From contig NC_135808.1 in assembly GCF_964213995.1 (NCBI RefSeq), positions 7,502,001 through 7,566,000 on the forward strand: a stretch of DNA of 64,000 nucleotides. Reading direction: 5' to 3'. The stretch comes from Mustelus asterias. Lineage: Eukaryota. Below the pieces are notes generated by a model, which was given only the letters and a program-made list of their open reading frames with translations, was not told where the DNA came from and searched no databases. Position 1 is the first letter of the stretch; the number at the start of each line of letters is the position of its first letter. Both the position numbers and the translations under genes were made by a program. Positions 5,569 through 54,838 of this stretch are shown here, in pieces.

Positions 5569-5606
5569 TCAGTAGCTGTTAGACGAAGCAGAAAGTATCC
5601 TATTTC
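5569..5606 (-). CDS. Gene A candidate terminal coding exon, short cytoplasmic tail [12 protein letters not shown]
   Basis: Very strong acceptor ttttttacttttcctttcctaacag in non-repeat DNA. Phase-1 join to the TM exon gives 12 aa then TGA (5571-5569). Confidence 0.55.
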
Positions 5607-8600
5607 CTGTTAGGAAAGGAAAAGTAAAAAATGTGATTATTTCCGTGGCAATTTTCGTAAGTAGTATTGAAGGTTAGCCATTTTCTTTATTTCAGACCTG
5701 GGCCGGGATTTTCGGGATGGCAGGGTTTATCTTCCACCATCCGAGGAGCCGTTATGGAACATGTCCCTGCTGATACTGCCTGTCAGGCAGCCATTTAATG
5801 CTCCAACAAGCGTTTTATTGGGGAGGAAATCGCACCTCAGTGAACTGCCGGTGATCTGCAGTCCTGCAGTTCCAGAAGCTGCAGTGGACAGAACTGGTAC
5901 TGCAGGCAACCGCCGAAGTCTCATCTCGGGAGTGACATGCAGTCATAGCATTTTATGGTACAAAAAGCAGCCCTTCAGCCCACCGTGTCTGCGCTGGCCA
6001 TCAAGCACTTATCTATTCTAACCCCATGTTCCTGCACTTGGTCCGTAGTTTTCTATACTATGACGTTTCAAGTGCTCATCTGCATGTTTCTTAAATGTTT
6101 TGAGTGTTCCATCATGTGCCATGCGTTCAGGCACTGGGTTCCAGATTCACAGCAGCCTCTGGGAGAAAAAGAAAATTCTCAAATCTTCTCTAAATCTCAT
6201 GTCCCTTACCTTAACTCTATGCCCTCTTTATGGACCCCTCTTCTGACGGAAAAAAAGTTCCTTCCTATCCACCCAATCTATGTTTCACATAATTTTGTAC
6301 CCTTCGATCAGGTCCCCGCTCAGCCTTCTCTGCTCCAAGGGAAGCAACCCCAGCCGAAACAGCCTCCCTTCATAGCTGAAACTCTCCAACTCAGCCCACA
6401 CTCTGGTGAATCTCCTGTGCACCCTCTCTAGTGTAATGATATCCTTCCTATAGTGCGGCGACCAGATCTGCGCACAGTTATCTAGCTGTGGCCAAGCACA
6501 TCAATAATAGTCTCCATGCGCTTTCGTTCTGAGCCTCCGCTAACAAAGTGCAGGACCAGGTAAGTGTAGATATCTCAGGACAGAATGGGGATTTTGAATC
6601 CGAGGGAGACGGCCAGGGGTGGGTGAGGTTGTCAGTCAAGAGACGGTGGGAGAGTGGGGTGCAGGGGAGGGGGAGGACCTGCAGGGAGTAAACATAAATT
6701 GGGAGGCAGGACGGACGCCTGTTGTCAAAAGGAGGCGGCTAATGGAGGCCTCCACCTTATCCCTTTCCTGCCAGCGTCCTGAACATAGTTCATTATCGAA
6801 CTTGCCCCTTTGCTCTTGGTTGCTCATAATTTGTATTTTTAATAAGGCTATAACATATAAGAGCAGAATTAGGTCGTTCGGCCCATTGAGTCTGCTGCGC
6901 CATTCAATCATGGCTGACATGATCCTCATCCCCATTTTCCTGCCTTCACCCGTAACTCTTGATCCCCTTATTGATCAAGATTCCATCTATTTCTGTCTTA
7001 AAGGCACTCACGAACCTGGCCTCCTCTGCAGCAATGAGTTCCACAGCATCCTCTGACTGAAGAAATTCCTCCTCATCTCAGTTTTAAAGAAACGTCCCTT
7101 CACTCTGAGGTTGTGCCCTCGAGTTCTAGTCTCTCCCACTAGTGGAAACATCCTCTCCACGTCCACTCTATCCAGGCCTCTCAGTATTCTGTAAGTTTCA
7201 ATTAGATCCCCCTCATCTTTCTAAACTCTATCGGGTCCAGAGCCAGACCCCTCAACCGCTCCTCATATGACAAGCCCTTCATTCCTGGGATGTTAATCCA
7301 AGTTACATCAATGGTACAAAAACGGATCACTGCAGCAGGGAAGTGCGTACGGGAATATAACGCAGAATCTTCAGTCTCCCTATAGCAACAGTGAAGCAGC
7401 AACAACCAGCACAGTGCCAAACCACCATCAGTACTGAGCTTGTTAAAAGCACAAAAGTAAACCGGCCAAGGCATGAAACAAAATGCTTCCCTTCTCATCG
7501 GGGGCATTGGTCACAATGAAAATGAGCGCTGTTTGGTTCTGGCGTATCATTGCTCTGTATTTTAGTTAATTTGCTTTACCAGCCTTGCTGTTCCGTCCTT
7601 AATGCTGTTCAAGTTACTCACTTGTAAGCGGTCCCCCTCTTTAACTTAAAGTGAAACGTCTGCAACATGCCTATTCGCTATCACACTCGCAATCTGTTGC
7701 TTCCAATCAGCATACTGCGGTAGCAAATTGAAAGAGACGCCCTCGTATTGGACCAGAGTGAGAGACACGGAGATGAGAAACCGGATGACGTCCGGATCGG
7801 GAGGCACAGAAAATTGAGACAAGGTGGGAAACGGCTCAATAATTGGCTACCTAATGACCTCAATTAAAGCTAGGCTAGGACTCGCCCCCTCCACAGAGAA
7901 AAATTGCTGCACTTCAGTCCCACGCTCCTGATCGACGGACACCCGGTGCGGAGAGGGGAGGGTCGGGATGGCGACCTCCTCGTGAACCTGCTCCTGGGCC
8001 TGGCGAAACGCGCCATTTACCGGTCCAGGCTGCGGGCGATCGAGGGGGCCGTCCATCCTGACTGTCTGCCCCTCTACCGCGGCTACGTTCGCGGCCAGGT
8101 GTCCCTGGAGAGGGAGCATGCGGTGTCCACGGGCGCGGTTGACGCTTTCCGCGCCCGCTGGGCACCGCAGGGGTTGGCGTGCATTATTGACCCCAATAAT
8201 CACATTTTAATTTGATGTTTTTAAGTTTCCTTTGTACTTTGATTTCTGTTCGGGCTGTTCCCCCTCCTTTTTGGGGAGCTGCCCCTTTTACTTTGTCCTG
8301 ATTTAATCTGAGTTTGTTTACTTGGTTTGGTTAGACCTAAAAAGAGGACAGAGAAAAATTGCGGAGGGACCATGAAGAATGCAACGTGACAAATAAGCAA
8401 ATAAGCTCACTCTTTGCTGAGAGTGCTCCCTACATACGAATGTACATCATTTCAAGTAAACACTACGAGTAAGGATAACCAATCGAGCTCCTAGCATGGC
8501 TCCGTTAAGCTTACTGCAAGTGCCATACATTCATAAATAGGAACCCATTCTCTGCAAAGAAACTAAACATGTTCAAGCCTTGCACATTTATTTTGGATAC

Positions 8601-11600
8601 CGGCGAGCTTGCTTCGCCTCTATTTCACGCTGCTTTCTCCATGCCAACGTTTTGGCCAATCGGAGTCGACTTTCCAACTAATGAGCACTCCTTTTCTCCT
8701 GTCTTTTCAAATATATAGTTGATTGCTTGCAGAATGGTGTAACATCATACCTGTGTAAGTCGTTGTCAATGTTCACATCTTCTATTTCAAAATCCTTCTT
8801 AAATTGAAAAACAATCTAATTATTTTATAGACTTTTGTTAACAAAGACTTGTTTAAATATATTCAGGAAGTTCCGGAAATACGCTTTACCGTGTATGTGG
8901 AATCCACTCGAGAGCCAGTTTTATTCTGTGAGAAATCTATCGTGAAGTAATAAACTTGAATAATTAAACGCCCAAAGAATTTATTAAGAGTTCTGTAATG
9001 TCACATGTCCATCTACTTGATATGTTTTCCGGTTATATTAACTGTCTGTCATCACTCTACCTTTCTATCCATACACCTAAACAATTATCTCTCTGTCCAC
9101 CTATCTTTCTATACACGTACCTCTCCAATTTACAAATTTCTGGCTGTTAATTGCAAAAGATATCAACGGCATTTCTCAAGAAGGAAATTTAACCCCAACA
9201 ATATGCGTACATGACTGTCCCACTCATAGACAGAAACGGATCTTTCATTAGATGATGATCTGATTGTTAACTTGTAGAATCATAGAGTCCTAAAGAACAG
9301 AAAGAGGCAATTCGGCCCAACAAGTCTGCACCGAACACAATCCCACCCAGGCCCTATCCCCATAACCCCGTGTATTTACTCTAGCTAGCCCGCCTAAAAG
9401 TAAGGGGCAATTTAGCATGGCAATCCACCTAACCCGCACATCTTTGGCCTATGGGAGGAAACTGAAGCACCCGGAGACACGGAGACATGGGGAGAACGTG
9501 CAAACTCCACACAGACAGAGACCCAGCCGAGAATCGAACCAGGTCCCAGGCGTTGTGAGGCAGCAATGCTAACCACTGTGCCACCATGCCGCCCCATGCC
9601 ACGTGCTAGATCTGCGATTGATAGCCTTGTGCTCAATGTATTGTAAGTTGGCAATGTTTGCCAATATCAAAATGGAGGTCAAGTTACTCTGGTTGTAATA
9701 TTTTGTGGCATCAAAATAATTCTTAAAACATGGACGATTGTAAATGTTGACGTTTACTAAAAGGAAATGCGATGTAAAAATAGGTATCTTTTGCAGCTGC
9801 AGCACCTTGGTGAAACTGCATCTGGAGGACGACACGAAGATTGCTGGAGTTGCGGATAGTGATGAACATTGTCAGAGAATACAGCAGGCTATAGATAGGC
9901 TGGAACAGTGGGCGGAGAAATGGCAGATGGAATTTAATCCAGATAAATGGGAAGTGATGCATTTCGGTCGATCTAATATCAGGGGAAGCTATACAATAAA
10001 TGGCAGAACCATCAGGAGTATAGGCACACAGAGGGACCTTGGTGCACAAGTCCACAGATCCTTAAGGGTGGCAGCACAGGTGGAGAGGGTGGTGAAGAAG
10101 GCATATGGCATGCTTGCCTTTATTGGACGGGGCATAGAATATAAAAGTTGGCATATGATGTTGCAGCTGTTTAGAACAATGGTTAGGCCACATTTGGAAT
10201 ACTGCGTCCAGTTCTGGTCGCCACACTACCAGAAGGACGTGGAGGCTTTGGAGAGAGTACAGAGAAGGTTTACCAGGATGTTGCCTGGTATGGAGGGGCT
10301 TAGCTATGAGGAGAGATTGGGTAAACTGGGGTTGTTCTCCCTGGAAATATGGAGGATGAGGGACGACCTAATAGAGGTGTATAAAATTATGAAGGGCATA
10401 GATAGGGTAAACAGTGGGAAGCTTTTTCCCAGGTCGGAGGTGACGAAACGAACACAAGGGGTCACGAGTTCAATGTGAGGGGGGCAAGGTTCAACACAGA
10501 TGTCAGGGGGACGTATTTTACACAGAGGGTGGTGGGGGCCTGGAATGCACTGTCAAGCAAGGTGATTGAGGCGGACACGCTGGGATCGTTTAAGACTTAC
10601 CTAGATAGCCACATGAACAGACTGGGAATAGAGGGATACCAAAGAATGGTCTAGTGGGCACATGAGCGGCGCAGGCTTGGAGGGCCGAAGGGCCTATTCC
10701 TGTTCTGTATTGTTCTTTGTTTGTTCTCTTTGTTTATTTTGTTCAGTTTTGGACTCTGTTTCGTAAAAAAATACCACTGCATTAGAAACTCGAAGCATTC
10801 CTGGTAGTAACGGCTTATCTTATAACGAAAGGTTAAACACGTTGGACCTATACACGAAGCGGACTTAATGGGATCAATGCAGAAGATGTTTCCTCGTGTT
10901 CTGGATAGAAGAAATAGGGGACATAATTTAAGATTAAGAGGTCTCCCAATTACAAAGGGATGAGGAGGGATTTTGTTTATCATCTCAGAGGGCCGTTAGC
11001 GTGTGAAATTCTCTTCCCCAGAAACCAGTGAACGCTGGGCCATTGAATTTAGTCAAAGTTGAGTTAGACAGATTTTTGACAGGCAAGGGAATACTGGGTA
11101 ATGGGAGGCAGGCGGGAAGGCAGAGTTGAGGCCACAATCTGAAGAATCATGATCTTAATCAATGGCGGAGCAGGTTCGATTGGGCCGAGTGACGGACTCC
11201 CGCAGCTAATGTCATTGTTCCAATGTTCCTAAGTGCTGCTTTCTGTTTTAAAACAGTGGCGAGGAATAGATTTATTCACTATATGTTAGTCAATCTAACA
11301 TTTCTGATGAGGAAACGACTACACAATATTGCCAAGGACAAGGAGGTAACCATGTATCGACGATGCATATGACAACGATTTAAAGGAACCAGTTTGGAGA
11401 GTGCTCGCATTCTACTTACAAGAATACATACCCTTACATTTCCATTTCAGGTTGCTTGCTACTATTATCGTGGGTAGCAAGATAATTAGTATAATAACTA
11501 GCAAGATTATTGTTTTCCACAGTGCAGATATGAAAGTGGTCGGGCAATTTGAATCCTTTATCCTCTCTGAAATGATAAAAAGAAGACAGTGTTTCTGCTT

Positions 11601-14600
11601 CTATGATCAGGTTGATGTTAAGGAGCAAAAATAGCTGTTCAACTCAAATTGTGGAATAGACTTAGTAACGCTTCGGATATACAGCACCGTGGAAACATAT
11701 TTGCAATAGACTTTAATTTGCATTTCTTTCTCACAGACATCTGAGCTCATATGTTAATAATCGACGTTTGACAGGGCATAGTTACTTGCACTTGTGAACT
11801 CAAGACACGTGAAGACACTGTAAACAGTAGCACTTTGGAAACAACAGACATGTCTGTAATCAAGATGCGGTTTGTTGTTGGATTGTAGTTTTGTAGTTTA
11901 AATTTCAATTTCAGCACTCAAAGTTCCGCCATTGCATCATTGCAGCAGTTACAGAGATTTAAATCTCTCGCTGCCACCTTAGAAATCCCAATCAATTCTC
12001 TTCCAGTATCAACAAATGAAACGAGTGTTTTGTCCCATCGTGTACCGAATCGCACAGTAGCCTTTGATTTGATTTGATTTATTATTGTCACATGCATTAA
12101 CATACAGTGAAAATATTGTTTCTTACACGCTATACTAGCCACTCCTCAGTAAAACATGCATTTACAAAGGGTTTTCACGTGTTATATTATGCGGTTCATG
12201 ACGTGTAGGCCTGACGGAAAATGTGAGAAGGTGGGAAAAAAATGTCGCAATATTCAAACATTTGAGATGTGTAACATGCTTACTGGAATAAATGTATGGA
12301 CAGCTGGTTAGTGATGCAGAGAGATGAAAACAGCGCGTGTTCAATTCTGAGGTTATTGATTAACCTTCTGAACCTAGCTCCTCGCCTGGCGTGTGGTGAT
12401 CCTGAAGTTAAATCAGCACCAGTCAGCTCTCCCCCTCAAAGGGGAGAGCAGCTTATGGCCATCTGAGACAATGGTGACTTTCCCTTTACCTACATTAACT
12501 TGTGAGTCATAGCAGTGATGCTAAGGCGGTTATACGTGTAACTATCATGTAGCAAAAAATCTAATTGGAGCTACCGAAGAAACCTTTCTCTGGGTTGACA
12601 GCGGATGTCAATTGTGCATGAAATCGCTCTGCCCGGTTTCTTAAGGACCTGCATTTATTGACAACAATTTAAGGCCATTGTTAAAATTGTGTTAAATTGC
12701 GCCGTCTTATTTTAAGGCACCTGTTTCTCTCATTCCATCACTCACCCCCGGGACTATCTTGTGTTACGAGGAGCACCTCAATTGATTGCAACACCAGTGT
12801 AATAATGATGTGGAGATGCCGGCGTTGGAGTGGGGTGGGCACAGTAAGAATTCTCACAACGCCAGGTTCAAGTCCAACAGGGTTAGTTAATATCACGAGC
12901 TTTCGGAGCGCTGCTCCTTCATCAGGTGAGTGATGAAAGAGGTGATCACTCACCTGACGAAGAAGCTGCGCTCCGAAAGATCGGGATACCAAATAAATCT
13001 GTTGGACTTGAACCTGGTGTTGTGAGACTTCTTACAGCAGTGTAATGGCAAGCGGTAAAGTAATTGCACGGTAGTTAAAACAGAAAAAAACGGGATCACA
13101 ACAATCTAACACGTGTAAAATTAGTGCATTTTTTTAAACGAAGCACATGTTTATACTTATCACTTACGCCTTATCACTTCCAGTTGGGTGCCATTTCCAT
13201 CCCTTACTTCTGCTCCCATTAAGTACACATGACAGTAATAGGTATCTGAGTCGTTCTCGGTCAAGTCGGAAATACTAATGAATATTCTGTTGTTGACAAA
13301 GGACTCGCTGTCCGACCTCTCCAGCCTATCTTTATAAAATGGGCTATACTCCAGTTTGTAGCCTCCTGGTTTACCTCGTGTCCAGTGAGCTGCTCCGATC
13401 AGCGAATGGTATCCTTCGAATTCCAAGGCACAATTCAGTGTCACCGACTCCCCCTCTGCTGCCGTTAGGAAGGGAGGGAACTGGTAAACGGTGAAATTCA
13501 TTTCCCCACCTATTGAAAGGGGAGAAACAATAACTTTAAACAAAAGCAGCTTGTTAATTTGGGTTGGTAAATGAAACTATCATTTTATATTATATGCGGT
13601 ACAAGAAGGCACCTTTTAGGAACGATTTGCAACGGGCAATGAATACTAGCTGAGACAGCGAAGCCCACATGCTTGAATGTCTATCCTTGATTGATAGACT
13701 GTTCTCTGCAGTCGACAGTGTGAGTCCGGATCGCTGAGTTGCCTGCTTGTAGGATCGGAATCCAATCTCACAATACCCCCAACGCCAAAAGCTTCATGGA
13801 TATAAACACTGCAAACAAGCCAAACCCCAATTGAACAGTAAGGAGGTTAATCTCCAAAACAAGTGGATACCGAAACTGGGACATTCCCACCTCAAAGATG
13901 ACTATCAGACAATCCAATTACAGAAAGTGGGAGACATTGGAGCTGATGGCCCCAGACATTATACAACCAAGAAATAACAAAAGCTAAGGAGAACTGACTT
14001 TGTCACATTCATGTCAACTTGGGAGCCAGAAATATTACAACTGAAAGAGGGCAATGTTTTTGTTGTGGACACATCATGATGAATCGTTCGCCTGAACTAG
14101 GACAAGAGCTATGTGCAAAGCGATTTAAAAGTGCTAAGCACTGACCATCCGGCCAGGACATCTGCAAGCACATGCTTTTATATTTTTTATACTGTTCTGT
14201 AATAGAAAGGGCAACACAGTCGAGTTTTTCATTGCAATCACAAAGGGCAGTTAGAAAGTTCAGGCTGATTTACGGATGTTAGGGACCGGATCAGAGCATC
14301 CGAGGCGGATTATGAAGTTAAATATGATCAGAATGAATTGGCACAAAACACATAGGCCCACATGGATGCTAGATTCCCAGCCTTGTAACCCATCTGGACA
14401 GAGATTCAGAAAGACACCTGTCTTCTGATTTCCATACAAGAACCTCCAGAGAAAGATCTATCTTCAAACAGCGAACTTCAGAGAAAGACAATTACTCATG
14501 GGCAGAATTCCAGAGAGAGGCAGAGTCACAGTGAGAGGTACTTCCTTCAAAGAATTTCCAGCAGCAACTGTTTTTCTGTGTAAGCCTATTCCTAGGCAGT

Positions 14601-22616: not shown

Positions 22617-22920
22617 GGGCAGCACGGTGGCACAGTGGTTAGCATTGCTGCCTCACAGTTCCAAGGGACTTGGGTTCAATTGCCGGCTTGGGACACTGTC
22701 TGTGTGGATTTTGCACATTCTCCCCGTGTCTGCGTGGGTTTCCTCCGGATGCTCCGGTTTCCTCCCAGGTGTGCGGGTTAGGTGGATTGGCCATTCTAAA
22801 TTGCCTCTTAGTGTCAGGGTGGATAGCTAGGGATATGGGATTAGGGCCTGGGAGGAATTGTGGTCAGTGCAGACTCAATGAGTCGAATGGCCTCCTTCTG
22901 CACTGTATGATTCTGTGATC
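22617..22920 (+). mobile_element. HE1-type V-SINE about 470 bp upstream of the gene A ATG
   Basis: GGGCAGCACGGTGGCACAGTGGTTAGC head; ATTCT-type tail. Confidence 0.9.
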
Positions 22921-27290: not shown

Positions 27291-27309
27291 TTTCATTTCT
27301 GAGCACCAG

Positions 27310-37661: not shown

Positions 37662-37880
37662 CTCAGAATTCCTACAGTACAGAAGGAGACCATGTGGCCC
37701 ATCGCGTCTGCACTGACCACAATCCCATCCAGGCCCGTACATTTACCCTGCTAGTCCCCCTGACACTAAGGAGCAATTTAGCATGGCCAATCAACCTAAC
37801 CCGCACATCTTTGGACTGTGGGAGGAAACCGGAACGCCTGGAGCAAACCCACGCAGACACGGGGAGAATGACCAAGCCAG
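37662..37880 (-). mobile_element. HE1-type V-SINE fragment inserted in a degenerate family-2 SINE
   Basis: V-domain core and tail; the flanks resemble SINE family 2. Confidence 0.75.
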
Positions 37881-39110: not shown

Positions 39111-39385
39111 ATCATAGAATCATAGATTCCCTACAGTGCCGAAGGAGGCCATTCGGCCCATCGAATCTGCACCGACCACAATCCCACCCAGGCCCTTTGC
39201 CCGTAACCCCACATATTTATCCTGCTAATCCCCTGACACGATGGGGCAATTTACCATGGCCAATCAACCTAACTCACACGTCTTTGGGCTGTGGGAGGGA
39301 ACCGGAGCACCCGGAGGAAACCCACGAATACACGGGGAGAATGTACAAACTCCGCACAGTCACCTAAGGCTGGAATCGAACACCC
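39111..39385 (-). mobile_element. HE1-type V-SINE
   Basis: Tail CATAGAATCATAGATTCCCTACAGTG plus V-domain core. Confidence 0.88.
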
Positions 39386-39729
39386 ATATTTGCACTAAAG
39401 ACACATTTTAGCCTAATATGAAAATTATTAGTAACTTCAAATTTAATTGCGGAATCGCAGAAAACATTAATCACGCTGACATCCTCTCTCTGAAATATAA
39501 CCTGCTCCCTGGCCCTGAAAGAACTATCAGATTATTGGCCATGATGCCAGTTGGCAAAATGCTATCCCCACTTTTGGACAGTTAAACTTAGTGCAGCTGA
39601 AGCAAAATGCTGATTTCTATCTTTCCAATTACATTGCGTTCAAATGTGGAAACGCAACCTGTTTCTTTAAGTGTCCGTCATTCTCTCCAGTCTTTGCTTG
39701 TTTTGATAGGTCGGGAAACATCGCCAAGG

Positions 39730-40042
39730 ACGGCACGATGGCTCAGTGGTTAGCACTGCTGCCTCACAGCGCCAGGGACGCAGGTTCGATTCCCGACTTG
39801 CGTCACTGCCTGTGTGCATTCTCCCCGTGACTGCGTGGGTTTCCTCCGAGTGCTCTAGTTTCCTCCAACAGCGCAAATATATGCGGCTGAGATCGCTTGG
39901 CCACGTTAAATTTCTCCCTTAGTGTTAGGGGGATTAGCTAGGGTAAATGCATGGGGTTATGGGGATAGGTCCTGGGTGGGATTGTGGTGGGTGCAGACTC
40001 GATGGGCCGAATGGCCTACTTCTGTACTGTAGGATTCTATAA
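39730..40042 (+). mobile_element. HE1-type V-SINE about 350 bp upstream of the gene B ATG
   Basis: Full-length copy. Confidence 0.9.
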
Positions 40043-40289
40043 GATCACAAGTTGCGAAGCAGCAGCCTGGTGCAACTTGGCGTGAGAGGAAACGGCCGCT
40101 GCTAATGATCAGAGACCAAATAAACATTCAACACTGGGTCCATCATATCTGCATCTGAACGAACATCATGACGACGAGGCGACTAATTCTTTTTTATTCG
40201 TCCATTTCGGCATTATTTTAAAGACACTACTTCAAAAGCGAAGAGTTCTTAATTTTGTCCAACAGTCTTGTGTATCTGTGTCGTCGAGG

Positions 40290-40375
40290 TGCTAACCACA
40301 ACTAATTCCATTCGCCGGCTTGAAGTGGGTTCCTGTTATATTATCTGCTCACCTTCGATCACCTCGTGGTTTCTT
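40290..40375 (+). promoter_or_regulatory. Candidate lymphoid-type proximal promoter of gene B (RUNX and ETS motifs)
   Basis: AACCACA 40294-40300, TTCCTGT 40330-40336 and CGTGGTTT 40365-40372, all within about 100 nt upstream of the ATG. Confidence 0.35.
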
Positions 40376-40391
40376 CACACACTCAAAAAAG

Positions 40392-40449
40392 ATGGCATTA
40401 AGTCAACAGCTCACTCTCCTGCAGTTCATTATCTTTGCAACGCGCACGG
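40392..40449 (+). CDS. Gene B exon 1, signal peptide ([20 protein letters not shown])
   Basis: aagATGG start context, 58 nt, consensus donor G|gtgagt, phase 1 matching the V exon. Confidence 0.87.
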
Positions 40450-43400: not shown

Positions 43401-46400
43401 CACAACCCTTTGTAGTTTCTTGCGGTCTTGGTCAGAGAGCCATAAGCATGATAAGGGGAGGTGATGGCCTACCGATATTATCGCTAGACTATTAATCCAG
43501 AAACTCAGCCCATGTTCTGGGGACCTGGGTTCAAACCCTGCCACGGCAGATGGTGGAATTTGAACTCAATAGAAAAAAACTGGAATTATGAATCTACTGA
43601 TGCCCATGAAACCGTTGCCGGTTGTCGGAAAAACCTATCTGGTTCACGAATGTCCTTTAGGGAAGGAAATCTGCCACCCTTACCTGATCTGGCCGAATTC
43701 AAAGCCACAGCAATGTGGTTGACTCTCAACTGCCCACCGAAATGGCCTCGCAAACCACTCAGTTCAAGGGCGACTAGGGATGAGCAATAAATGCTGGCCA
43801 GCCAGCAACACCCACGTCCCACAAATGAATATAAAAATTAAAAAATCCTGGTTGGCTCTCCAGTGCCTTATGGAGGTAGTGCTGCACTGTTGGAGGTGTC
43901 GACTATTGGACGGAACATTAAACCAAGTGAATGTAAAAGTCCCATGACCTTATTTCGAGGAATTTCAAGGCAGATATCCTCCATGTCCTGGCCAATATTT
44001 GCCCTTCAACCAGTATCATAAAACAAAAATAAATTATCTGCTCAGTTTCTCATTGTTATTTGTGTGAGCTTACTGTACGCAAATCGGTTGTACTTCCTAC
44101 ATGGCAAAAGGGGCCGCACCTCCAAAGTACTCAACCGGCTCCAAAGTGAATTGGGATGTACTGAGGTCGTGCAAGGCGCTATAGAAATGTATGTCTTCAT
44201 TTATGTATATATGTTTACAATCGCGCCTTTCCCATAATGCAAACAACATCTTCCCATCAAATTTTAAAACATTGACTTCATCTCCTTATTTCAGGCAAGA
44301 CTGCGGAGGAAACTATCGGAAATCCTTACCTGATATTTGGACTGGGAGGTGCTTCAGTTGTGCTGAGTATAACCGTCATTGTACTTATATGTGGACTGTC
44401 CTGGCAAAACAAAGGTGTGTGTGTCAGTCCTATTTGCTAATATGTTTTCGCTATAGTACGGAGCAATTGCTCTGGTTGCTATGAGAACCAATCTGGTTAA
44501 TGCTTCCAATGAATTTGTCACTTTTTCTAGTGTGATCAGAAACCCGATTAGTATGAGCAATTATTTTAAAACACGCTTAGGTATTCCCTTCAGAATTTTA
44601 CAATTGTTCCAATTCAGAAAGGCGCCATTCGGCCCGTCATGTCTGCGCTGGATCCACGTAGGAACAATTAACCTACTGTCACTCGCTGGCATTCTCCCCA
44701 TTTTCAGATAATAATCCAAATCAGCCTTGGAAACCTCGAGTAAATCTGATTCACTCATAATCTCAGGCACTGCATTCCAGACCCTAACCAGTCGAGTGAT
44801 AAAATATTCTCCTCTGTCGCCATTGCTTTTTAGCTAAATCACTTAAATTTGCCAGTCATTTAAATCTGTGCCCTCTGGTTCTAGATCCTTCCACTAAAGG
44901 TACCATTGTCACTATCTACTCTTGCCAGGCCCCTCGAGAATTTGAATAAATGAAAAATCTCATCACAGCCTTTTGTCTCCAAAGACAAAAGTCCACCTTT
45001 CTTAATCAATATGAAATGCCTTAGTCCAATGAAGAAGGAAATATCATCAGAGACCCAGACAAGACGGTGGCCTAGTGGCATTGTCGATAGATTAATAATC
45101 CAGAAGCTCAGCTAATGTTCTGGGGACCCGGGTTCGAATCCCACCTCAGCAGATGGTGGAATTTGAATTCAATAAAATATATCTGGAATTGAGAATCTAC
45201 CGATGACCATAAAAAAGGTTGTCAGAAAAACCCATCTGGTTTACTGGTGTCCTTTAGGGAAGGAAATCTGCCTTTGCTGCCTGGTCTGACCTACATGTGA
45301 TTCTGGAGCCACAGCAATGTGGTTGACTCTCAACTGCCCTCGGGTAACTAGGAATGGGCAATAAATGCTAACCAGCCAGCCCATGTCCCACGAATGCATA
45401 AAAAAGAATCTCTACAGTGCAGAAGGAGGCCATTCAACCTATCGAGTTCACACCGACTCTCCAAGAAATTTCCCACACCCCAAACCTCATGTAATCACCC
45501 TAACCCACTAATCCTGGGACACTAAAGGGAAATTTAATATAGCCAATCCCCCTAGCCTGCACATTTTGGATTCTGGGAGGAAGTAGGAGCACCCGGAGAA
45601 AACCCACACGGACACGGGGAGAATGTGCCAACTCCACATGGACAGTCACGCAAGGCTGGAAGTGAACCTGGGTTCCTGGTGTTGTGACGCAGCACCATAT
45701 TCATGCACTCATCCGTGCATATGTATCGCAATCAGTTTCTCTATGTCAGTGTTAAAGATCAATTTTATGTTTTAATAAGTAGCAGATTTAAACAATTATA
45801 TTAACGTCAGTATCATTTTCTTCCAGTTATCCGGAGACTAAGAAGGTAAAAAATATCAAATCTTATCAAATTGGTGATTATTCAGAACATGATGTGCAGA
45901 ATTTTAAATTTAAACATCATTTTGCTTCCTACAGACAGCGCGCTGAAATCGATGTGGTACCTGGTATGTGAATTTTATGTATTCTGCATTAATTACTATT
46001 CCTGGCTAATTGAAAACAAATCTAAAATAAAAAATACATTTACAAATAGTTTCATTCCAATGAATTCAATCTCTGTTGCTACCTGTGCCTATGTATGTCT
46101 GTTATGTTTGTTGTACTTATAGCTCTGACCCATCTCTGAATGCTATTCCCACAGCACCAGCCGATCTACAGCCAGCGACACAGGTAAGAGCGTCCTGATA
46201 AGCAATAGCTTTCCACAAATTCGCTATACCTTATCTCCAGCGATGGGTCTGCTCTATTCCCTCCCGGCTTTCAATATCCTGTATATGCTTGTGAAGGTTT
46301 GACTCTGTTACAACAAAATGGGAGAAATGTTTATACATTCCGACCAAATTAAATCAGCCGTAAACCATGTACAGTACAATATTGAATTAGTTATTTCAGT

Positions 46401-49400
46401 CTCAGAGGTCGCAAGGTCCGAAATGAGATAAGTAGACTTATATAAGTAAGGATCTTTCCAGAGTTTTGTGCGTCAGGATGTTGATCAAGCAGAGTAGAGG
46501 CAAATTCGCCTTCTGGACTATAGCAGATCCGGAAATATGGCATCATGCTACATATTGAGATTGCAGCAATGTGTTCCATTGGACCGCGTTGACGATTGTC
46601 ATCCGAATGAACACAAACATACATTAACCATTTGTGGTGCTATACTCAGGCATACCTCATCTCATTGTGGTGCCTTTTCTCTTCTTATCACGCACAATTT
46701 AAGTAATACTACCTTAGGCGTGTTTCAAACATTGTAACTCCATGAATAATTAATTTTTAAAAAATAAGTTTTGATGCTATATTTATATTTCTAACCAAGA
46801 TAAACTTAACAATTTCTCATTCCCGTTTTTCCCTATGGCGTGGTGCCAGCTTGCATGACTCTCAAGAGGGTACGTGGCAAACAACCGGATTAATTATTTG
46901 TCAGATGTGACTTCCCACCTTAAATTTTCAGAAGTTTCACTTTTCTCCGCAGAAACCACTCCAGGATCATTCTGGAAGATAATAACAACTGCACTCTGTT
47001 TTCCTCTACGAGTTTAAACCACTTTCCTCATTACCTACACTCCCATCTCCAGAAACATGTGAGAGAAACCCCAGAGTTTTTTTTCTCCGACCATAGAGGC
47101 CGATTCTCCAGTTGTCAGGTTCATAGAATCCATTGGATCCCTATAGTGCAGAAGGAAGCCATTCGGCCCATCGAGTCTGCACCGACCATAATCCCACCCA
47201 GGCCCTATCCCCATAATCCCATGCATTTACCCTAGCTAGACCCCCTGACATTAAGGGGCAATTTAGCACGGCCAATCCACCTAACCAGCACATCTTCGGA
47301 CTGTGGGAGAAAACCGCAGCACCCAGCGGAAACCCAGGCAAACACGGGGAGAATGTGTAGACTCCACACAGACGGTGACCCGAGGCCGGAATTGAACCCA
47401 GGTCCCTGACGCTGTGAAGTAGCAGTGCTAACCACTGTGCCACCGTTCCCTCCATCTTTCCTTTATCTACTAAGTCAAATCTTCCATCGTACTGTCTCCA
47501 CTGATTCCCTGAAATTTGGTCTCTTATTAGGCCCTGCCCAATTCCCCGCAACCCCTCCAAATTCATTTCATTCATGAGATCCCCATTCTCATCTCTTCAC
47601 CAGTATTCTGCAAGGATTGTCACAGGAAACAATCTCTCTCCTGTGGAGTAATTTCAAGAAAAGATTCCTTGCCCTTGGTGAAACACTCTGTGCATTTTTT
47701 CTTTTCCTGCTCGTCCATTTGTCCTTGCTGTGTTGCTGTTGTACGATATCTTTAGTTTTCGGAGGTTTCAACAGATCGAGTGTGGAAGACAGGAAACATC
47801 TTGGTCGCGGAGTGTGCGGTATTCCTGCACACCAATAGGAATTTGTTAAGTCATTTGATCAGAGAACCTTGTTCTCTGGTCGCTCTCAAGGTATGTTTCA
47901 TAGCTTGGATGAAACATTCTGCGGCGCCCATTTGTCAGAGGGTGGGACAGTGTGGACTTAATAAGTTGAATACCATTCTCTCGTAAGAAACGTTTGAATT
48001 CTTGCAGGGCAAATTGAGATCCATTCCCACTTATAAGTTGCTCAGGGAATGCAAAATGATGAAACACTTCTCCAAGCTTCTCAATCGTCTTCTGCGGTGA
48101 GACAGATGTCATCACAGCGACCTCTGACCACTTGTATAAGCATCGACCGATACCAAGAACATATTGGCGGCATGGTGGCACGGTGGTTAGCACTGCTGCC
48201 TCACAGTGCCTGGGACTCAGGTTCAATTCCTGGCTTGAGTCACTGTCTGTACGGAGTCTGCACGTTCTCTCCGTATCTGCGTTAGTTTCCTCTGGATGCT
48301 CCGGTTTCCTCCCACAGTCTGCTTATGTGCATTGGCCATGGTAAACCTCCCTCAGCGTACCCGAACGGGTGCCAGAGAGTGGCGACTAGAGGACTTCCAC
48401 AGTAACTTAATTGCAGTGTTAATGTCAGCCTACTTGTTCATCCATAGCGAGGCAAAGAGGAGTGATTTGCTGCAGGAGTCTGGGGTAAGAGATCGACTTT
48501 TAACATTACTTTTTTTGCGGGCTTTATTTTTTTTAAACTTTAAAACGGGAAGTAGCCGCGGGGTATTGTGGGAAGGGTGTAGATTTTGTTTTCAGCTCGG
48601 GAGGGTTAAGAGCAGGCCGCACTACCCAGCGGGCAGCGTCGTTAGCGGGCAGCGGAGTGAGGGCTGAAGGGCTTTGGCTCAACGGGCTTAGGAGGAAACG
48701 GGCGAGGCATGTTAGGTTCATCTCGTAGTTTTACCAGTGTACTTGAAGAAAGGGGAATTATGAGTGAAAGTCCAGTTTGTTGTTCTCGGTGTCGGATGTG
48801 GGAGTTCCTGGAGGCAGCTAGCCTCCAGCACGTCCATATCTGCACCGGTTGCATCGAACTGCAGCTCCGAAGGGACCGCGTTACGGTACTGGAGCTGCGG
48901 CTCGATGACCTTCGTCTGGTCAGGGAAAATGAGGAGCTGATAGATAGGAGTTCATAGAAATCATAGAAATCATAGAAACCCTACAGTACAGAAAGAGGCC
49001 ATTCGGCCCATCGAGTCTGCACCGACCGCAATCCCACCCAGGTTCTACCCCCATATCCACCCACTAATCCCTCTAACCTACGCATCTCAGGAAACTAAGA
49101 GAAATTTTTAGCATGGCCAATCAACCTAACCCGCACATCTTTGGACTGTGGGAGGAAACCGGAGCACCCGGAGGAAACCCACGCAGACACGAGGAGAATG
49201 TGCAAACTCCACACAGACAGTGACCCAAGCCGGGAATCGAACCCAGGTCCCTGGAGCTGTGAAGCAGCAGTGCTAACCACTGTGCTACCGTGCCGCCCCT
49301 CTTTACCGTAACTCTGTAAAGAGTTACAGGCAGGTGGTCACACCGGGGCCACAGGAGGAAGACACGTGGGCCACAGTTAGGAAGGGGAAAGGTCACGTAC

Positions 49401-52400
49401 TACAGAGTACCCCGGTGGCTGTGCCCCTTAAAAATAAGTACTCCTGTTTGAGTGCTGTTGTGGGGAGCAGCCTACCTGGGGGAAGCAACAGTGGCTGTGC
49501 CTCCGGCACAGAGTCTGGCCCGGCAGCTCAGAAGGGTAGGGAAAGGGAGGATGGATCGTGTTTTCGAAATCCTTAAGGGGGAGGTGGACCAGCCCCAAGT
49601 CGTGCAGGGAAAGTGGTAAAAGAGGGAGAGGTGTGGCATTGTTAGTCAAGGACAGTATTACAGTGGCAGAAAGGACATTTGATCAGGACTCGTCTACTGA
49701 AGTAGTTTGGGCTGAGGTTAGAAACAGGAAAGGAGAGGTCACCCTGTTGGGGGTTTTTTATAGACCTCCGAAAAGTTCCAGAGACGTAGAGGAAAGGATT
49801 GCAAAGACGATTCTGGATAGGAGCGAAAATAACAGTGCAGTTGTTATGGGGGACTTTAACTTTACAAATATTAACTGGAAAAGCTATAGTTCGAGTACCT
49901 TAGAGGGGTCAGTTTTTGTCTAATGTGTGCAGGAAGGCTTCCTGACACAGTATGTAGATAGACCAACAAGAGGCGAGGCCACATTGGATTTGGTACTGGG
50001 TAATGAACCAGGCCACGTGTTAGATTTGGCGGTAGGTGAGCACTTTGGTGATAGTGACCACAATTCTATTACGTTTACCTTAGCAATGGAAAGGGATAGG
50101 TATATACCGAAGGGCAAGAGTTATAGCTGGGGGGAAGGAAATTATGATGCGAATAGGTAAGATTTAGGTGGCATAGGTTGGGGAAGGAAACTGCAGGGGA
50201 TGGGCACAATTGTAATGTGGAGCTTGTTCAAGGAACAGCTACTACGCATCCTCGATAAATATGTACCTGTCAGGCAGGGAGGAAGCAGACGTGTGAGGGA
50301 ACCATGGTTTACTAAAGAGGTTGAACCTGTTGTGAAGAGGAAGAAGGAGACTTATGTTAAGATGAGACGTGAAGGCTCAGTTAGGGCGCTTGAGAGTTAC
50401 AAGCTGGCCAGGAAGGACCTAAAGAAAAAGTTAAGAAGAGCCAGGAGGCGGCATTACAGGTCTTTGGCAGGTAGGATCAAGGAAAACCCTAAGGCTTTCT
50501 ATAGGTATGTCAGGAGTAAAAGAATGACTCGGGTAAGATTAGGGCCAGTCAAGGACAGTAGTGGGAAGTTATGCGTGGAGTCTGAAGAGATAGGAGAGGC
50601 ACTGAATGAATATTCTTCATCGGTATTCACACAGGAGAGGGACAGTGTTGTCGAGGGGAGTACTGAGATGCAGGCTGTTGGACTGGATGGGATTGAGGTT
50701 CATAAGGAGGAGGTGTTAGCGACTCTGGAAAGGGTAAAATAGATAAATCCCCTGGGCCGGATGGGATTTATCCTAGGATTCTCTGGGAGGGAAGAGAGGA
50801 GATTGCAGAGCGTTTGGCTTGTTCTTTGTGTCGTCAGTGTCTACAGGAACAGTGCCAGAAGACTGGAGGATAGCAAATGTTGTCCCCTTGTTCAAGAAGG
50901 GGAGTAGGGACCACCCTGGTCATTATAGAGCGGTGAGCCTTACTTCTGTTGTGGGCAAAGTTTTGGAAAGGATTATAAGAGATAGGGTTTATAATCATCC
51001 AGAAAGGAATAATATGATTAGGGATAATCAGCACGGTTTTGTGAAGGGTAGGTCGTGCCTCACAAACCTTATTGAGTTCTTCGAGAAGGTGACCAAAGAG
51101 CTGGATGAGGGTACAGTGGTTGATGTGGTGTATGTGGATTTCAGCAAGCGTTTGATCAGGGTCCCCATGGTAAGCGATTGAGGGTGATTTAGTGGTTTGG
51201 ATCAGGAATTGGCTAGCTGTAAGAAAACAGAGGGTGGTGGTGGATGGGAAATATTCATCCTGGAGTTCAGTTACTCGTGGTGTACCGCAAGGATCTGTTT
51301 TGGGGCCACTGCTGTTTGTCATTTTTATAAATGACCTGGATGAGGGCGTAAAAGGATGGATTAGTAAATTTGCAGATGACGCTAAAGTCGGTGGAGTTGT
51401 AGACAGTGTGGAGGGAAGTGGCAGGTGACAAGGGGATATAGATAAGCTGCAGAGCTGGGATGAGAGGTGGCAAATGGAGTTTAATTCGGAAAAGTGTGAG
51501 GTGATTCACTTTGGAAGGAGTAACAGGAATACGGAGTACTGGGCTAATGGTAAGATACTTGATAGTGTGGATGAACAGAGGGATCTGAGTGACCATGTGC
51601 ATAGATCCCTGAAAGTTGGTACCCAGGTTGATAGGGGGTTGTTAAGAAGGCATACGGCGTGTTAGCTTTTATTGGTAGAGGGATTGAGTTTCGGAGCCAT
51701 GAGGTCATGCTGCCACTGTACAAAACTCTGGTGCGGCCGCACTTGGAGTATTGCGTACAGTGCTGGTCGCCGCATTATAGGAAAGATGTGGAAGCGTTGG
51801 AAAGGGTGCAGAGGAGATTTACCAGGATGTTGCCAGGCATGGTGGGAAGATCGGATGAGGAAAGGCTGAGGGACTTGAGGTTGTTTTCGTTAGAGAGAAG
51901 AAGGTTAAGAGGTGACTTAATAGAGGCATACAAGATAATCAGAGGATTAGATAGGATGGATAGTGAGAGCTTTTTTCCTCGGATGGTGATGGCTAACACG
52001 AGGGGACAGAGCTTTAAATTGAGGGGTGATAGATATGGGACAGATGTCAGAGGTAGGTTCTTTACTCAGAGAGTAGTAAGGGCGTGGAATGCCCTGCCTG
52101 CAGCAGTAGTGGACTCGTCAACATTAAAAGCATTCAAATGGTTATTGGATAAACATATGGATGATATTGGAATAGTGCAGATTAGAGGGGCTTTAGATTG
52201 GTTTCACTGATCAGTGCAACATCGAGGGCCGAATGGCCTGTACTGCGCTGTAATATTCTATGTTCTATGTTCTTGTGACTAATATATACATTTTACGTCC
52301 TTCAGAAGGTCCTGCAAAATCCACATGCATGTATCGCCACGCCTCTACAACCCGTTCCCATGTATTTCCTCTATGTGTACCACTCACAATGACCCTCATA

Positions 52401-54838
52401 TAGCTTCTCTAACACCTGTTCCCTCGATGGAGGCGGAATACGTTCTCTGAGCCCCCAGTCAACACACACTGACTCCAATTTCCCGGAGCAGTAGGATTTC
52501 AGATTTATTCTTGCTCTGAGGTCTTGCCTCATAATACCATATCCATCACTTCTGAAAGTATTGGATCACTCCAAGTGTGCTGCCTCCTTTGTTTGGAGTG
52601 ACTGATGTGTTTTCTACTTGATCAACGTAGAAAGTATTCCCACTTGAGTAGTTTGATGAACTACCTGGCAGTGGTAATCTTGAAAGTCCATCTGCATTAC
52701 CATGTAGACTTGACTGTTGATACTTAATAACGTAGGTAGTTCAGACAAAAGCAATGCCTCTCTTTTCATTGTACTTGTTACAGCTGACAGAATTCCCATG
52801 TGTGGTCCAAAAATAGTAGCTAATGGACAATGGTCCATTAACAATGCGAACTTCCTGCTGTACAAGAATTGATGGAATTTCTTTACTCCAAAAATGATTC
52901 CTAATGCTTCCCTTTCAATCTGGGAAGGGTCACTTTCACCTTTTCTCAGGGTTCAAGAAGCAAAAGCAATGGGTGATGGCAAGTTGCGAGGGACCACTAC
53001 TCCTGAACCATAAGGAGATGCATTGCAAGCTAACTGAGGATCAAAGTGCATGAGAGGTTCAGATTTAAGTAACGCTCAGTCCATTCAGGATCTGATCCGT
53101 TGCTATTTGAATTAATGCAGGAAATAATCTGATACCAAATGGTCATCTTCGGTACTGGAAGAAGCCTGTATGTGTCAGAATCGGCAGAAGGTCCTGCGAC
53201 TTCTTGTTCACGTTTATCTGTAAGTAGGCTTGGCTCAGATCAATTTTGCTGTAATCTGGGTTCTCAGGTTGCCTGCAACTATGCTAAGGGAAGTGGGCAC
53301 CATAATATCTTCAACTATTTTGTTTGCCTGTGAAAAACAATCAAAATGTTCAGTATAAGAGCTTCGTGGCTCCACATTTTCATCAGAGTCCCAGGACACA
53401 GAAAACCCCTGCCTTTTTCTACTAATGTACGTTTCCCCTATGCGCACTTTGCAACTGTGTTCTAGCAGCTACGTTGATTCCCACACACACAAGTTTCAGC
53501 CTCATTTATCACAGGTAGCGGGTACAATATGTTTTGTAGGCAGACTATCGTTAATCACGTCTAACTAGCCCGTTGGTTCTCTTGAGCACATGTTTGACAG
53601 GTGAAACGCTTTCCTTTCTAACTTTCCTTTTGTCCAACTGTTCTCGGTAAAATTCTTCTTCCCGAGTGGCTAGCCAGCATATGTTCATAGTCCTCGTCGC
53701 CAGTTTTTCTGTTGTAGTTTGGAGGTATGGTGCCAGGGAGAATGGCTGAGCTCTTACATAGCTGTTCTACTCTCTGTTTCCCGTTCTAGGATGTGTGGCG
53801 TCACTTCCGGAGAATACATTCAATCAACAGAGTTTCAGTTTAAGTTAAACTTATGTTTTAGTGTCACAACTGGGCTTCCATTAACACTGCAATGAAGTTA
53901 CTGTGAAAATCCCCTAGTCGCCACACTCCAGTGTCTATTCAGGTACACTGAGGCGGAATTTAGCATGGCTAATGCACCTAACCAGCACATCTTTCACACT
54001 GTGGGAGGAAACCGGAGCACCCGGAGGAAACCCACGCAGACAGGATTTAACGTGCAAACTCCACACAGACAGAGACCCAAGCCAGGAATTGAACCCTCGT
54101 CCCTGGCGCTGTGAAGCAGCAGTGCTAACCATTGTGCCTCCGTACTGCCCAAGAGTTAGAGCCAATAAGAAGTAACGCAAATACGTGACAATATGGGGGG
54201 ACGATTTTTGATGAGGTGTGCTTAAAATCTAGAAGGCACTGACTAAGTGTCATGGAGGGAAATTCAATTATATCTTCAAAGATTGGAGATTGGATAGTTT
54301 TCTAAAGAGGACATATTTGCAGGGCAACAACAAACAGTGCGGGACTGTTATTGGTTGAGTTGTTCTTGTAGATCGGACACGGACACAATAAGACAAATAT
54401 ATCCTTCTGTGGTGTAGACAAAGCGCCACCAATCAACTCTGAAAGGAGAGAGTAACCTATGGTCCTCTGGGACTATGGCGACGTTTACAAACTATTTACT
54501 TGTCTCAACTCATCTCCACCAACCTGGGCCACCACTTGCGATGCTAAACTCTTTCTCCGTCTTAACTCTGCATTTTTTCTTTTCCTGATTACACATTACT
54601 CTGATTCCTTTGAAATTTTTTCTACGTTAAGGATGCTGTAAACATGTGAAATGATGTAGCTGTAATTCTGCGCACTGCGGATGAAACATATTTTTTATCT
54701 TATTGCAATGATTATTAGGTTCACTCTAATCGTGGCAGTATTTCCCTACATTACGCCAAACTGAAAATCAAGCAACAGAAGAAGGCAAAGAAAATGAACT
54801 ATGACACAGATCATGCCGAATACGCCACCATCCGCTGA
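40392..54838 (+). CDS. NCR3-like: Gene B: NKp30/NCR3-like single IgV(J) inhibitory receptor with ITIM and ITSM-like tail. Exons 40392-40449, 42202-42540, 44295-44414, 45827-45845, 45935-45963, 46155-46183, 54719-54838; 237 aa
   Basis: Seven exons (58+339+120+19+29+29+120=714 nt), all GT-AG, join into one open frame: leader, [29 protein letters not shown], then [68 protein letters not shown]. Confidence 0.87.
41093..42001 (+). repeat. 24-bp minisatellite (consensus about AACATTAACCTGCCCACACAACCC), about 37-38 units, in intron 1 of gene B
   Basis: Tandem 24-nt periodicity visible directly; the ORF track shows 8-aa repeats (NINLPTQP). Confidence 0.95.
42202..42540 (+). CDS. NCR3-like: Gene B exon 2, VJ-type IgV domain (NKp30-like)
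   Basis: Acceptor tgtttttcccaacag, donor gtaagt, 339 nt, phase 1-1. Contains VTLNC, IGATYW, DSDTYYC and GSGTHLEV. Confidence 0.93.
43455..43835 (+). mobile_element. SINE family 2
   Basis: Full-length, with B-box-like GGTTCAAACC. Confidence 0.85.
43860..44200 (+). mobile_element. DeuSINE-like element (AmnSINE1/SacSINE1-type)
   Basis: GTGCTGCACTGTTGGAGGTG...TCCTGGCCAATATTT...CTGAGGTCGTGCAAGGCGCTATAGAAATG resembles the Deu domain and tail as I recall them. Confidence 0.65.
44295..44414 (+). CDS. Gene B exon 3, stalk plus uncharged transmembrane segment
   Basis: Acceptor tctccttatttcag, donor AAG|gtgtgt, 120 nt, phase 1-1. Encodes [40 protein letters not shown]. Confidence 0.88.
45062..45695. 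mobile_element. SINE family 2 (45062-45405, plus) tail-to-tail with an HE1 V-SINE (45405-45695, minus)
   Basis: Each part matches other copies in the window. Confidence 0.85.
45827..45845 (+). CDS. Gene B exon 4, 19-nt micro-exon (VIRRLR, juxtamembrane basic patch)
   Basis: Acceptor cattttcttccag, donor AAG|gtaaaa; phase 1 to 2. Confidence 0.72.
45935..45963 (+). CDS. Gene B exon 5, 29-nt micro-exon ([10 protein letters not shown])
   Basis: Acceptor ttttgcttcctacag, donor CTG|gtatgt; phase 2 to 1. Confidence 0.72.
46155..46183 (+). CDS. Gene B exon 6, 29-nt micro-exon ([10 protein letters not shown])
   Basis: Acceptor tgctattcccacag, donor CAG|gtaaga; phase 1 to 0, matching the terminal exon. 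Confidence 0.75.
47120..47446 (-). mobile_element. HE1-type V-SINE
   Basis: Full-length copy. Confidence 0.9.
48165..48437 (+). mobile_element. V-SINE with alternative tail; the end of its tail resumes at 52272
   Basis: ...GCCTACTTGT | CR1 | CTTGTGACTAAT. Confidence 0.85.
48438..52271 (+). mobile_element. CR1 LINE retaining 5'UTR and ORF1 start, internally deleted, with disrupted ORF2 (endonuclease plus RT) and (TTCTATG)n tail
   Basis: ORF1 [20 protein letters not shown]..leucine zipper; APE YRPP, MGDFN, LDLVL, SDHN; RT motifs; several stops and frameshifts. Confidence 0.95.
48953..49300 (-). mobile_element. HE1-type V-SINE inserted in CR1 ORF1
   Basis: GAGTT duplicated at 48948-48952 and 49321-49325; ORF1 reads IDRS|YRQVVTPG across the insertion. 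Confidence 0.92.
53838..54150 (-). mobile_element. V-SINE with alternative 3' tail
   Basis: Reverse complement of the 32247 copy. Confidence 0.88.
54719..54838 (+). CDS. Gene B terminal coding exon with ITIM (LHYAKL, 54746-54763) and ITSM-like motif (AEYATI, 54815-54832)
   Basis: Acceptor ttttttatcttattgcaatgattattag, 39 codons plus TGA, two Tyr motifs 23 aa apart, followed by AT-rich non-repeat sequence with AATAAA. Confidence 0.88.
   Translation, partial: VHSNRGSISLHYAKLKIKQQKKAKKMNYDTDHAEYATIR

Follow-up and report, generated by a model that had tools for sequence, protein, structure and literature searches.

Two neighbouring genes of the shark NCR3 (NKp30) family are encoded on opposite strands in a window of 64,000 nucleotides (contig NC_135808.1 of NCBI RefSeq assembly GCF_964213995.1, positions 7,502,001 to 7,566,000 of the forward strand; the coordinates below count from the first letter of this window). 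The two genes are probably divergent neighbours, of which gene B, on the plus strand, is an inhibitory receptor whose tail combines an ITIM (immunoreceptor tyrosine-based inhibitory motif) with an EYATI motif, while gene A, on the minus strand, is an activating-type paralogue with a lysine in its transmembrane (TM) segment. They would constitute family-level counterparts with opposite wiring and not a tight pair held alike by gene conversion. The start codons are located at 22150 (minus strand, gene A) and 40392 (plus strand, gene B), 18,242 nt apart. A six-frame scan and a tblastn search with the V frame of gene A as the query reveal two V exons in the whole window and no others: the five tblastn matches are the query itself, the region 42204-42545 (68.4% identity over 114 aa, E 1e-52), and three matches with E values above 5. 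The initial annotation of this window had described two divergent single-V genes starting at these codons, and both were found where it placed them.

Family assignment of the V domains

The V-set domain of Pfam is recognized in both genes (E 3e-12 for gene A and 9.3e-14 for gene B). In gene A, it is encoded by a VJ-type V-set exon of 342 nt (13168-13509, minus strand, phase 1-1), and in gene B by an exon of 339 nt (42202-42540, plus strand, phase 1-1), each with an AG acceptor and a GTAAGT donor. The J-like GxGTxLxV strand (GNGTQLEV in gene A and GSGTHLEV in gene B) lies within the single V exon in each case. A HMMER search against 1.84 billion representative sequences yielded 188 matches at E ≤ 1e-3. 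The best of them (P0003, E 5.6e-37) is GenBank entry QTT61901.1, deposited as natural cytotoxicity triggering receptor 3 of the nurse shark Ginglymostoma cirratum; the V domain of gene A is 69% and that of gene B 60% identical to it. The corresponding identities to P0001 from Scyliorhinus canicula are 78% and 66%.

Comparison with solved structures points to the same family. Against 177,635 sequences of solved structures, the family profiles ranked four human NKp30 chains on top. With a profile built from shark sequences only, these chains were matched with E values between 4.5e-11 and 1.2e-10, followed by SIRP-beta1 (9.5e-9). In searches of the PDB with single sequences, NKp30 scored no better than SIRP or the V domains of antibodies and was thus not separated from them.

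A phylogenetic tree was reconstructed from 13 of approximately 177 retrieved proteins and the two V exons of the window, omitting the isoform duplicates P0001 and P0006, as well as P0161, P0162, P0004, and every match from outside the sharks or with several domains. Both genes fall into a carcharhiniform clade of the QTT61901 subtype (support 93/95), in which gene B pairs with P0159 from Mustelus (support 99/99), while gene A, the gene B-Mustelus pair, and the Scyliorhinus genes form an unresolved trio. Both genes would therefore be products of one carcharhiniform sub-clade of this subtype. The initial annotation had called them NKp30-like and had proposed a homology search and a phylogeny of their V domains; carried out here, these analyses agree with it, as both genes group with shark NCR3 sequences.

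Judged by these similarities, genes A and B are members of the already published shark NCR3 (NKp30) family. The nurse-shark NCR3 family was reportedly described by Kinlein et al. in 2021 in Immunogenetics (73:333). An excerpt of one study lists the nurse-shark genes as MT914154-914161 and presents NCR3 as a non-rearranging VJ gene linked to the major histocompatibility complex (MHC) (PMC12227049), and a passage of another mentions NCR3/NKp30 among MHC-linked VJ exons (PMC10751288). No MHC gene was found within the 64-kb window.

Gene B encodes a probable inhibitory-type receptor

Gene B agrees exon by exon with Mustelus asterias LOC144497821 (P0159), which well supports its assignment as an orthologue of this gene and as an inhibitory-type receptor of the NCR3 family. 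The seven exons of gene B, all on the plus strand, sum to 714 nt, i.e., 237 codons and a stop, and P0159 has a length of 237 aa. The leader exon (40392-40449, 58 nt) matches the N-terminus of P0159 at 19 of 21 residues, and the V domain is 83.6% identical over 116 aa. The stalk/TM exon (44295-44414, 120 nt, phase 1-1; 71% identity over 45 aa) lies 1.75 kb past the V exon and encodes an uncharged TM segment and a stalk without cysteine. The tail exon (54719-54838, 39 codons followed by TGA; 82% identity over 39 aa) is located 10.3 kb past the TM exon.

The tail exon yields its two tyrosine motifs, LHYAKL and AEYATI, only when it is entered in phase 0, and an in-frame route to it from the TM exon requires three micro-exons. 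The first, X1 (45827-45845, 19 nt, phase 1 to 2, acceptor ttccAG and donor GTAAAA), encodes V-IRRLR, the counterpart of VILRLR in the orthologues. It is followed by X2 (45935-45963, 29 nt, phase 2 to 1, acceptor ctacAG and donor GTATGT) and X3 (46155-46183, 29 nt, phase 1 to 0). The splice sites of all three are good. The product of the micro-exons aligns position for position with the 26-residue juxtamembrane segment of P0159. P0159 has the length, leader, V, TM, juxtamembrane segment, and LHYAK[VL]/xEYATIR tail in common with gene B; it differs in the V identity of 83.6% and in the distal motif (DEYATI in place of AEYATI). The uncharged TM and the ITIM that the initial annotation had noticed in gene B are thus present, as are the TM and tail exons of its gene model; the model reaches the tail in frame only via the three micro-exons. 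A candidate segment upstream of X3 (LNAIPT, 46136-46153, plus strand), likened to IDAIP of Mustelus, was rejected: the spliced X2 (EIDVVP) already supplies this part of the protein, and the candidate may be fortuitous or left over from an earlier exon boundary.

In an excerpt of PMC12151841, the ITIM is defined as (S/I/V/L)xYxx(I/V/L) and the immunoreceptor tyrosine-based switch motif (ITSM) as TxYxx(V/I); the same excerpt gives (T/V)EYATIx(F/Y) as the consensus of the distal motif of PD-1 and states that the C-terminal SH2 domain of SHP-2 prefers Ala in position pY+1 and Ile in position pY+3. LHYAKL fits the ITIM, and the form common to Mustelus and Scyliorhinus is S[LV][HQ]YAK[VL]. AEYATI, the motif called ITSM-like earlier, does not fit the ITSM due to the Ala at pY-2, but it contains EYATI, the core of PD-1's distal motif. 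The two tyrosines of the tail are 23 residues apart.

Comparable tails occur in S. canicula (proximal SVQYAKV, distal VEYATI), Heterodontus (SQQYAKV, AEYATI), Heptranchias (SVHYVQV, VEYATI), and Pristiophorus (YAQL, VEYASI). In Ginglymostoma (P0003), the tyrosine of the proximal ITIM is replaced (SICNAKV) and the distal VEYATI is retained, which suggests a stronger constraint on the distal than on the proximal motif in the QTT61901 subtype. An extra juxtamembrane tyrosine is found in P0158 from Heterodontus (AMYATI) and P0153 from Heptranchias (PIYETV), and is lacking in the window, Mustelus, and S. canicula.

Gene B corresponds to a type I receptor in which a V domain of the VJ type and an uncharged TM segment are followed by a tail of about 70 residues, contributed by three micro-exons and the last exon. 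Once phosphorylated, its tandem of tyrosine motifs would most likely recruit a phosphatase with tandem SH2 domains (SHP-2 or SHP-1) and thereby damp the cell. At the S. canicula loci of P0001 and P0157, the isoforms annotated as X2 lack the TM exon, with the reading frame preserved, and retain the tyrosine tail. As the TM exon of gene B is phase-symmetric, this gene could also yield an isoform devoid of the TM segment.

Divergence of the two V domains

The V exons of genes A and B agree in 78 of the 112 codons aligned, close to the 77 of 113 counted in the initial annotation, and in 79.8% of their nucleotides. Their synonymous divergence (dS) amounts to 0.50 and their nonsynonymous divergence (dN) to 0.18, which gives a dN/dS of 0.36. 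Such values exclude chance similarity and, by these measures, the duplication is old and under selective constraint, with no recent gene conversion. The leaders of the two genes are also alike beyond what is expected of 300 shuffled sequences (score 12, shuffle maximum 8).

The V exon of gene A is free of stops and frameshifts, contains the complete set of canonical residues, and forms a short branch (0.14) in the tree. At the 35 sites where the two genes differ, the residue of the family majority is retained by gene A at 19 and by gene B at 11 sites. The consensus at these sites was derived from nine sequences (P0156, P0157, P0002, P0158, P0003, P0160, P0161, P0162, and P0153), with P0159 kept apart. 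The V domain of gene A is, on this count, the conservative one of the pair. Since 21 of the 35 states of gene B are common to Mustelus P0159, the divergence of gene B predates that split. A majority of the differences (20 of 35) fall within V positions 27-41, 46-54, and 95-105. With the J motif and Cys26, Trp42, and Cys92 as landmarks, V-domain topology would place these positions in loops resembling the first, second, and third complementarity-determining regions.

Gene A and its lysine-containing TM exon

Gene A is plausible as a lysine-TM paralogue of gene B, a credible and partly supported candidate by its sequence. Its leader exon (22093-22150, minus strand; 58 nt when counted from the start codon at 22150) ends with a GT donor and resembles the leader of gene B. 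The leaders of both genes thus measure 58 nt and end in a GT donor, as had been noted before; their equal length is less certain for gene A because of an in-frame ATG 15 nt upstream. This second start codon (22165, read as 22165-22151 on the minus strand) has a weak context and would add the residues MSSSA.

The stalk/TM exon of gene A (11432-11566, minus strand, 135 nt, phase 1-1) lies 1.6 kb past the V exon and is in phase with it. It encodes a stalk with a single cysteine, a hydrophobic span with a lysine, and the stop-transfer sequence SNLKWKCK, which contains KWKCK. Its acceptor is strong (ttttatcatttcAG) and its donor is GTATGT. An alternative, phase-compatible GTAAGG donor is present 6 nt earlier (11437-11432, minus strand) and would alter the product by two residues. 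As a control for chance, the six frames of the window, with some stretches excepted, were scanned for open segments with a 19-residue hydropathy of at least 2.4. Among the 11 hydrophobic segments obtained, the TM exon of gene A scores highest (3.27). Only two of the 11, namely the TM exons of genes A and B, are bounded both by an acceptor in phase 1 that follows a pyrimidine tract and by a GT donor in phase 1, and only the exon of gene A carries at least two Lys or Arg residues just after the core. The top rank among these segments and the matching splice phases make a convincing case for the exon being real.

The TM exons of the two genes show no significant likeness to each other (score -19, compared with -34.6 ± 9.7 and a maximum of -3 for shuffled sequences). 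Together with the V exon being the sole genic DNA match between the two genes, this agrees with the earlier claim that their signalling halves are unrelated. A gapped match (ALW...KGM) between the TM segments of gene A and S. torazame was set aside because of its E value of 10.

The 3' end of gene A is defined less sharply. Downstream of the TM exon, 60 acceptors are phase-compatible, and none of the 60 candidate next exons yields an ITIM, an ITSM, or an immunoreceptor tyrosine-based activation motif (ITAM). Reading through the donor provides another possible end (11412-11431, minus strand), GMYSCK, with a stop at 11414-11412 and AATAAA at 11276. Gene A is probably an older paralogue which retained the leader and a conservative V domain next to an unrelated stalk/TM exon. 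The cysteine in the stalk would probably mediate a disulfide-linked dimer, the tail would be short and devoid of tyrosine motifs, and the receptor would most likely signal, if at all, via an ITAM adaptor with an acidic TM residue.

Evidence against an activating gene A and alternative readings

Several observations weigh against gene A as an activating partner of gene B. The lysine does not lie within the most hydrophobic 19-mer: it directly precedes it, beside a tryptophan, at the outer edge of the core, so that it could be interfacial and not adaptor-docking. Of 155 retrieved proteins, none is homologous to the TM exon (the best E value, 0.074, reflects a hydrophobic run). The 12-aa tail exon proposed in the initial annotation (5569-5606, minus strand) is phase-compatible and otherwise unsupported, being one of 52 short candidates among the 60 acceptors and without a match among the 155 proteins; of that part of the earlier model, the lysine-containing TM exon is borne out and the tail exon is not. 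The V exon of gene A is contained in two sequencing runs from one study, with their kind unrecorded and neither listed as RNA.

Word-indexed searches open to full-length proteins found, within their sensitivity, no annotated protein of the gene A architecture in the subtype. In these searches, eight of nine and 11 of 2069 candidates passed, all of them of the gene B type or fragments; they come from Scyliorhinus, Mustelus, Heterodontus, Ginglymostoma, Chiloscyllium, and Heptranchias. Finally, a ligand shared by the two receptors is doubtful in view of a V-domain identity of only some 70% and of the position of 20 of the 35 differences in loop-like stretches. The earlier suggestion that the two receptors see related ligands is correspondingly weak, given also the dS of 0.50.

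One rather unlikely alternative is that gene A is expressed without being activating, as a decoy with a short tail or as a partner chain joined by a disulfide, in which the interfacial lysine engages no ITAM adaptor. The position of the lysine beside the tryptophan, the single stalk cysteine, and a tail that is short and motif-free for every 3' end considered are all consistent with such a protein. On the other hand, several mammalian receptors recruit FcR-gamma or CD3-zeta through basic residues near the outer third of the TM segment. Moreover, the lysine of gene A is preceded by FISALW, six hydrophobic or aromatic residues, and can therefore sit inside a span of 26 residues.

It is likewise improbable that gene A represents a silent or decaying duplicate, i.e., a copied leader and V exon beside an exon-like hydrophobic segment, without expression. 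The lack of RNA among the recorded runs fits this explanation, as do the 3' end left undefined among 60 candidate acceptors and the lack of an annotated orthologue in Mustelus, Scyliorhinus, and the other sharks searched. The V exon argues otherwise: it is intact, with canonical residues and a short branch, and has diverged from that of gene B at a dN/dS of 0.36 over a dS of 0.50. Splice sites, phase, stalk, and stop-transfer sequence are, furthermore, combined in the TM exon of gene A in a manner matched only by the TM exon of gene B.

An inhibitory gene A, with its TM exon spliced to distant tyrosine-motif exons outside the window, is hardly credible: although the tail exon of gene B also lies as far as 10.3 kb past its TM exon, no VILRL-type, PQPxxQ-type, or tail exon occurs on the gene A strand in the window (VILRL-, PQPxxQ-, HSNRGS-, and EYATI-type peptides are absent from 1-9477 and 9526-11431), tblastn with four full-length orthologues matched this strand solely at the V exon, and the TM exon is unlike the conserved TM of the family. 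The long ITIM-bearing tail, named in the initial annotation as a finding that would contradict an activating gene A, is therefore encountered neither in the 60 continuations nor in the scanned stretches of the window.

The pairing of an inhibitory gene B with an activating-type gene A remains the preferred reading. Beyond it, a tentative and on balance doubtful scenario may be considered for the origin of gene A, in which a carcharhiniform activating-type receptor was born from an anciently inhibitory, PD-1-tailed gene of the NKp30 family. The V domain would have been kept, a TM exon with a lysine and a cysteine-containing stalk swapped in, and the inhibitory V domain would then have diverged, as though escaping or tracking a ligand or pathogen. 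If this were true, the NKp30 lineage would ancestrally be of an ITIM/EYATI checkpoint type, activating partners would have been born repeatedly, and mammalian NKp30 would be derived.

Comparison with known receptor systems

In mammals, the NKp30 family is represented by a lone activating receptor, which binds B7-H6, and human NKp30, encoded by one gene, carries an arginine in its TM segment that couples to CD3-zeta or FcR-gamma. Its structures (PDB ID: 3NOI, 3PV6, 6YJP, and 9FWW) share with genes A and B the single VJ-type V domain and the GxGTxLxV strand. The arginine-containing TM has no match in either gene, as gene B combines an uncharged TM with an inhibitory tail, and gene A has a lysine, a stalk cysteine, and an unrelated TM. 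Nurse-shark QTT61901.1 resembles gene B in its uncharged TM, the AILRLKR juxtamembrane segment, and the VEYATI end, and differs from it in the loss of the proximal tyrosine. A lysine TM of the gene A type was encountered in none of the retrieved nurse-shark proteins, nor did the retrieved proteins include a counterpart of gene A from Mustelus.

The tail of gene B is comparable to that of PD-1, as a proximal ITIM is followed by a distal motif with the EYATI core, at a spacing of 23 residues in gene B compared with Y223/Y248 in human PD-1. According to an excerpt of PMC12151841, the proximal motif of cartilaginous-fish PD-1 has Ala at pY+1, as in gene B. The differences concern the ectodomain, which is NKp30-like in gene B, and position pY-2 of the distal motif, occupied by Ala in gene B and by Val, Asp, or Ala in other sharks, not by Thr. 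The occurrence of this PD-1-like ITIM and EYATI tail across a shark NCR3 subtype, in at least six shark genera, is better supported than the pairing of the two genes. The subtype joins the ectodomain of a natural killer receptor to wiring of a checkpoint type, and the tail of gene B offers a defined construct for assays of SHP binding and of B7-H6-like ligands.

Classical paired receptors include KIR2DL/DS, SIRP alpha/beta, and PILR alpha/beta, whose ectodomain identity is usually well above 80%. Genes A and B resemble such pairs in their close linkage, their related V-type ectodomains, and the ITIM tail of one gene; for the counterpart, in which a short tail follows a TM segment with a basic residue, gene A is a candidate. 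They depart from them in ectodomains that are about 70% identical, with a dS of 0.50 and no recent homogenization. The paired-receptor design put forward in the initial annotation stands as far as the linkage and the ITIM of gene B are concerned; the lysine of gene A, at the edge of the core, makes it a candidate activating member, and the similarity of the ectodomains stays below the usual 80%.

The design proposed for gene A, with a stalk cysteine, a TM lysine, and a tail devoid of tyrosine motifs, is apparently not unique to the window. In Heterodontus francisci, the NCR3-like protein XP_067865594.1 (P0054) contains a stalk cysteine, a TM lysine, and a 31-residue tail without tyrosine; the neighbouring accession, XP_067865593.1, belongs to a protein with an ITIM. 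Unlike gene A, however, it has an unrelated TM sequence and a long branch in the tree, and its V domain is only 42% identical. Other NCR3-like proteins are diverse in their signalling parts as well: an arginine TM is found in proteins of sturgeon, bichir, frog, and turtle, and tails with an ITIM or ITSM in relatives from spadefoot toads, manta ray, and bichir. Among the proteins of at most 300 aa with the J-like motif (48 entries, 27 with a TM segment called by a crude hydropathy window), the tail shows an ITIM pattern in nine of the 27, and Lys or Arg occurs within the 21-residue window in 15 of them.

In Xenopus, XMIV is said, after Ohta et al. in 2006, to be an expanded, MHC-linked multigene family of NKp30-like VJ genes with mixed signalling types. 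The contrast in wiring between genes A and B would be a property of a large multigene cluster and not of one dedicated pair. The earlier statement that NKp30 lacks an ITIM-bearing partner is true for mammals, whereas ITIM-tailed shark NCR3 proteins have been deposited since 2021. No account of an NKp30-like receptor with an ITIM or of an inhibitory elasmobranch NCR3 was found in the literature search, which did not extend to the primary papers on shark NCR3. For the most part, the window contains a published multigene family found again, to which a single putative variant with a lysine TM is added. If gene A is expressed and coupled to an adaptor, the locus would present a testable split between activating and inhibitory receptors within the NKp30 family as it occurs in the oldest jawed vertebrates.

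Organization of the locus

At the DNA level, the regions of genes A and B share little besides repeats. Of the 20 blastn matches between them, one is genic, comprising the V exon and about 55 nt of the 3' intron (78.4% identity over 403 nt), and the other 19 are interspersed repeats. The head-to-head geometry looks incidental, with 18.2 kb of repeats separating the start codons.

The bulk of the likeness between the two regions is provided by copies of an interspersed repeat of about 300 nt, located at 22617-22919, 45405-45694, 47142-47446, 48969-49298, and 53945-54150, which are 71-80% identical. Open frames for the reverse transcriptase of long interspersed nuclear elements are present at 55964-57988 and 49540-52207 on the plus strand and at 20065-21095 and 433-1161 on the minus strand; they lie in and around both genes, including the first intron of gene A, and one of them extends for 484 aa without a stop. 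Much of the first intron of gene B is occupied by a 24-nt tandem repeat (41118-41999, consensus CACAACCCAACATTAACCTGCCCA), which is present in 36.8 copies with 78% matches.

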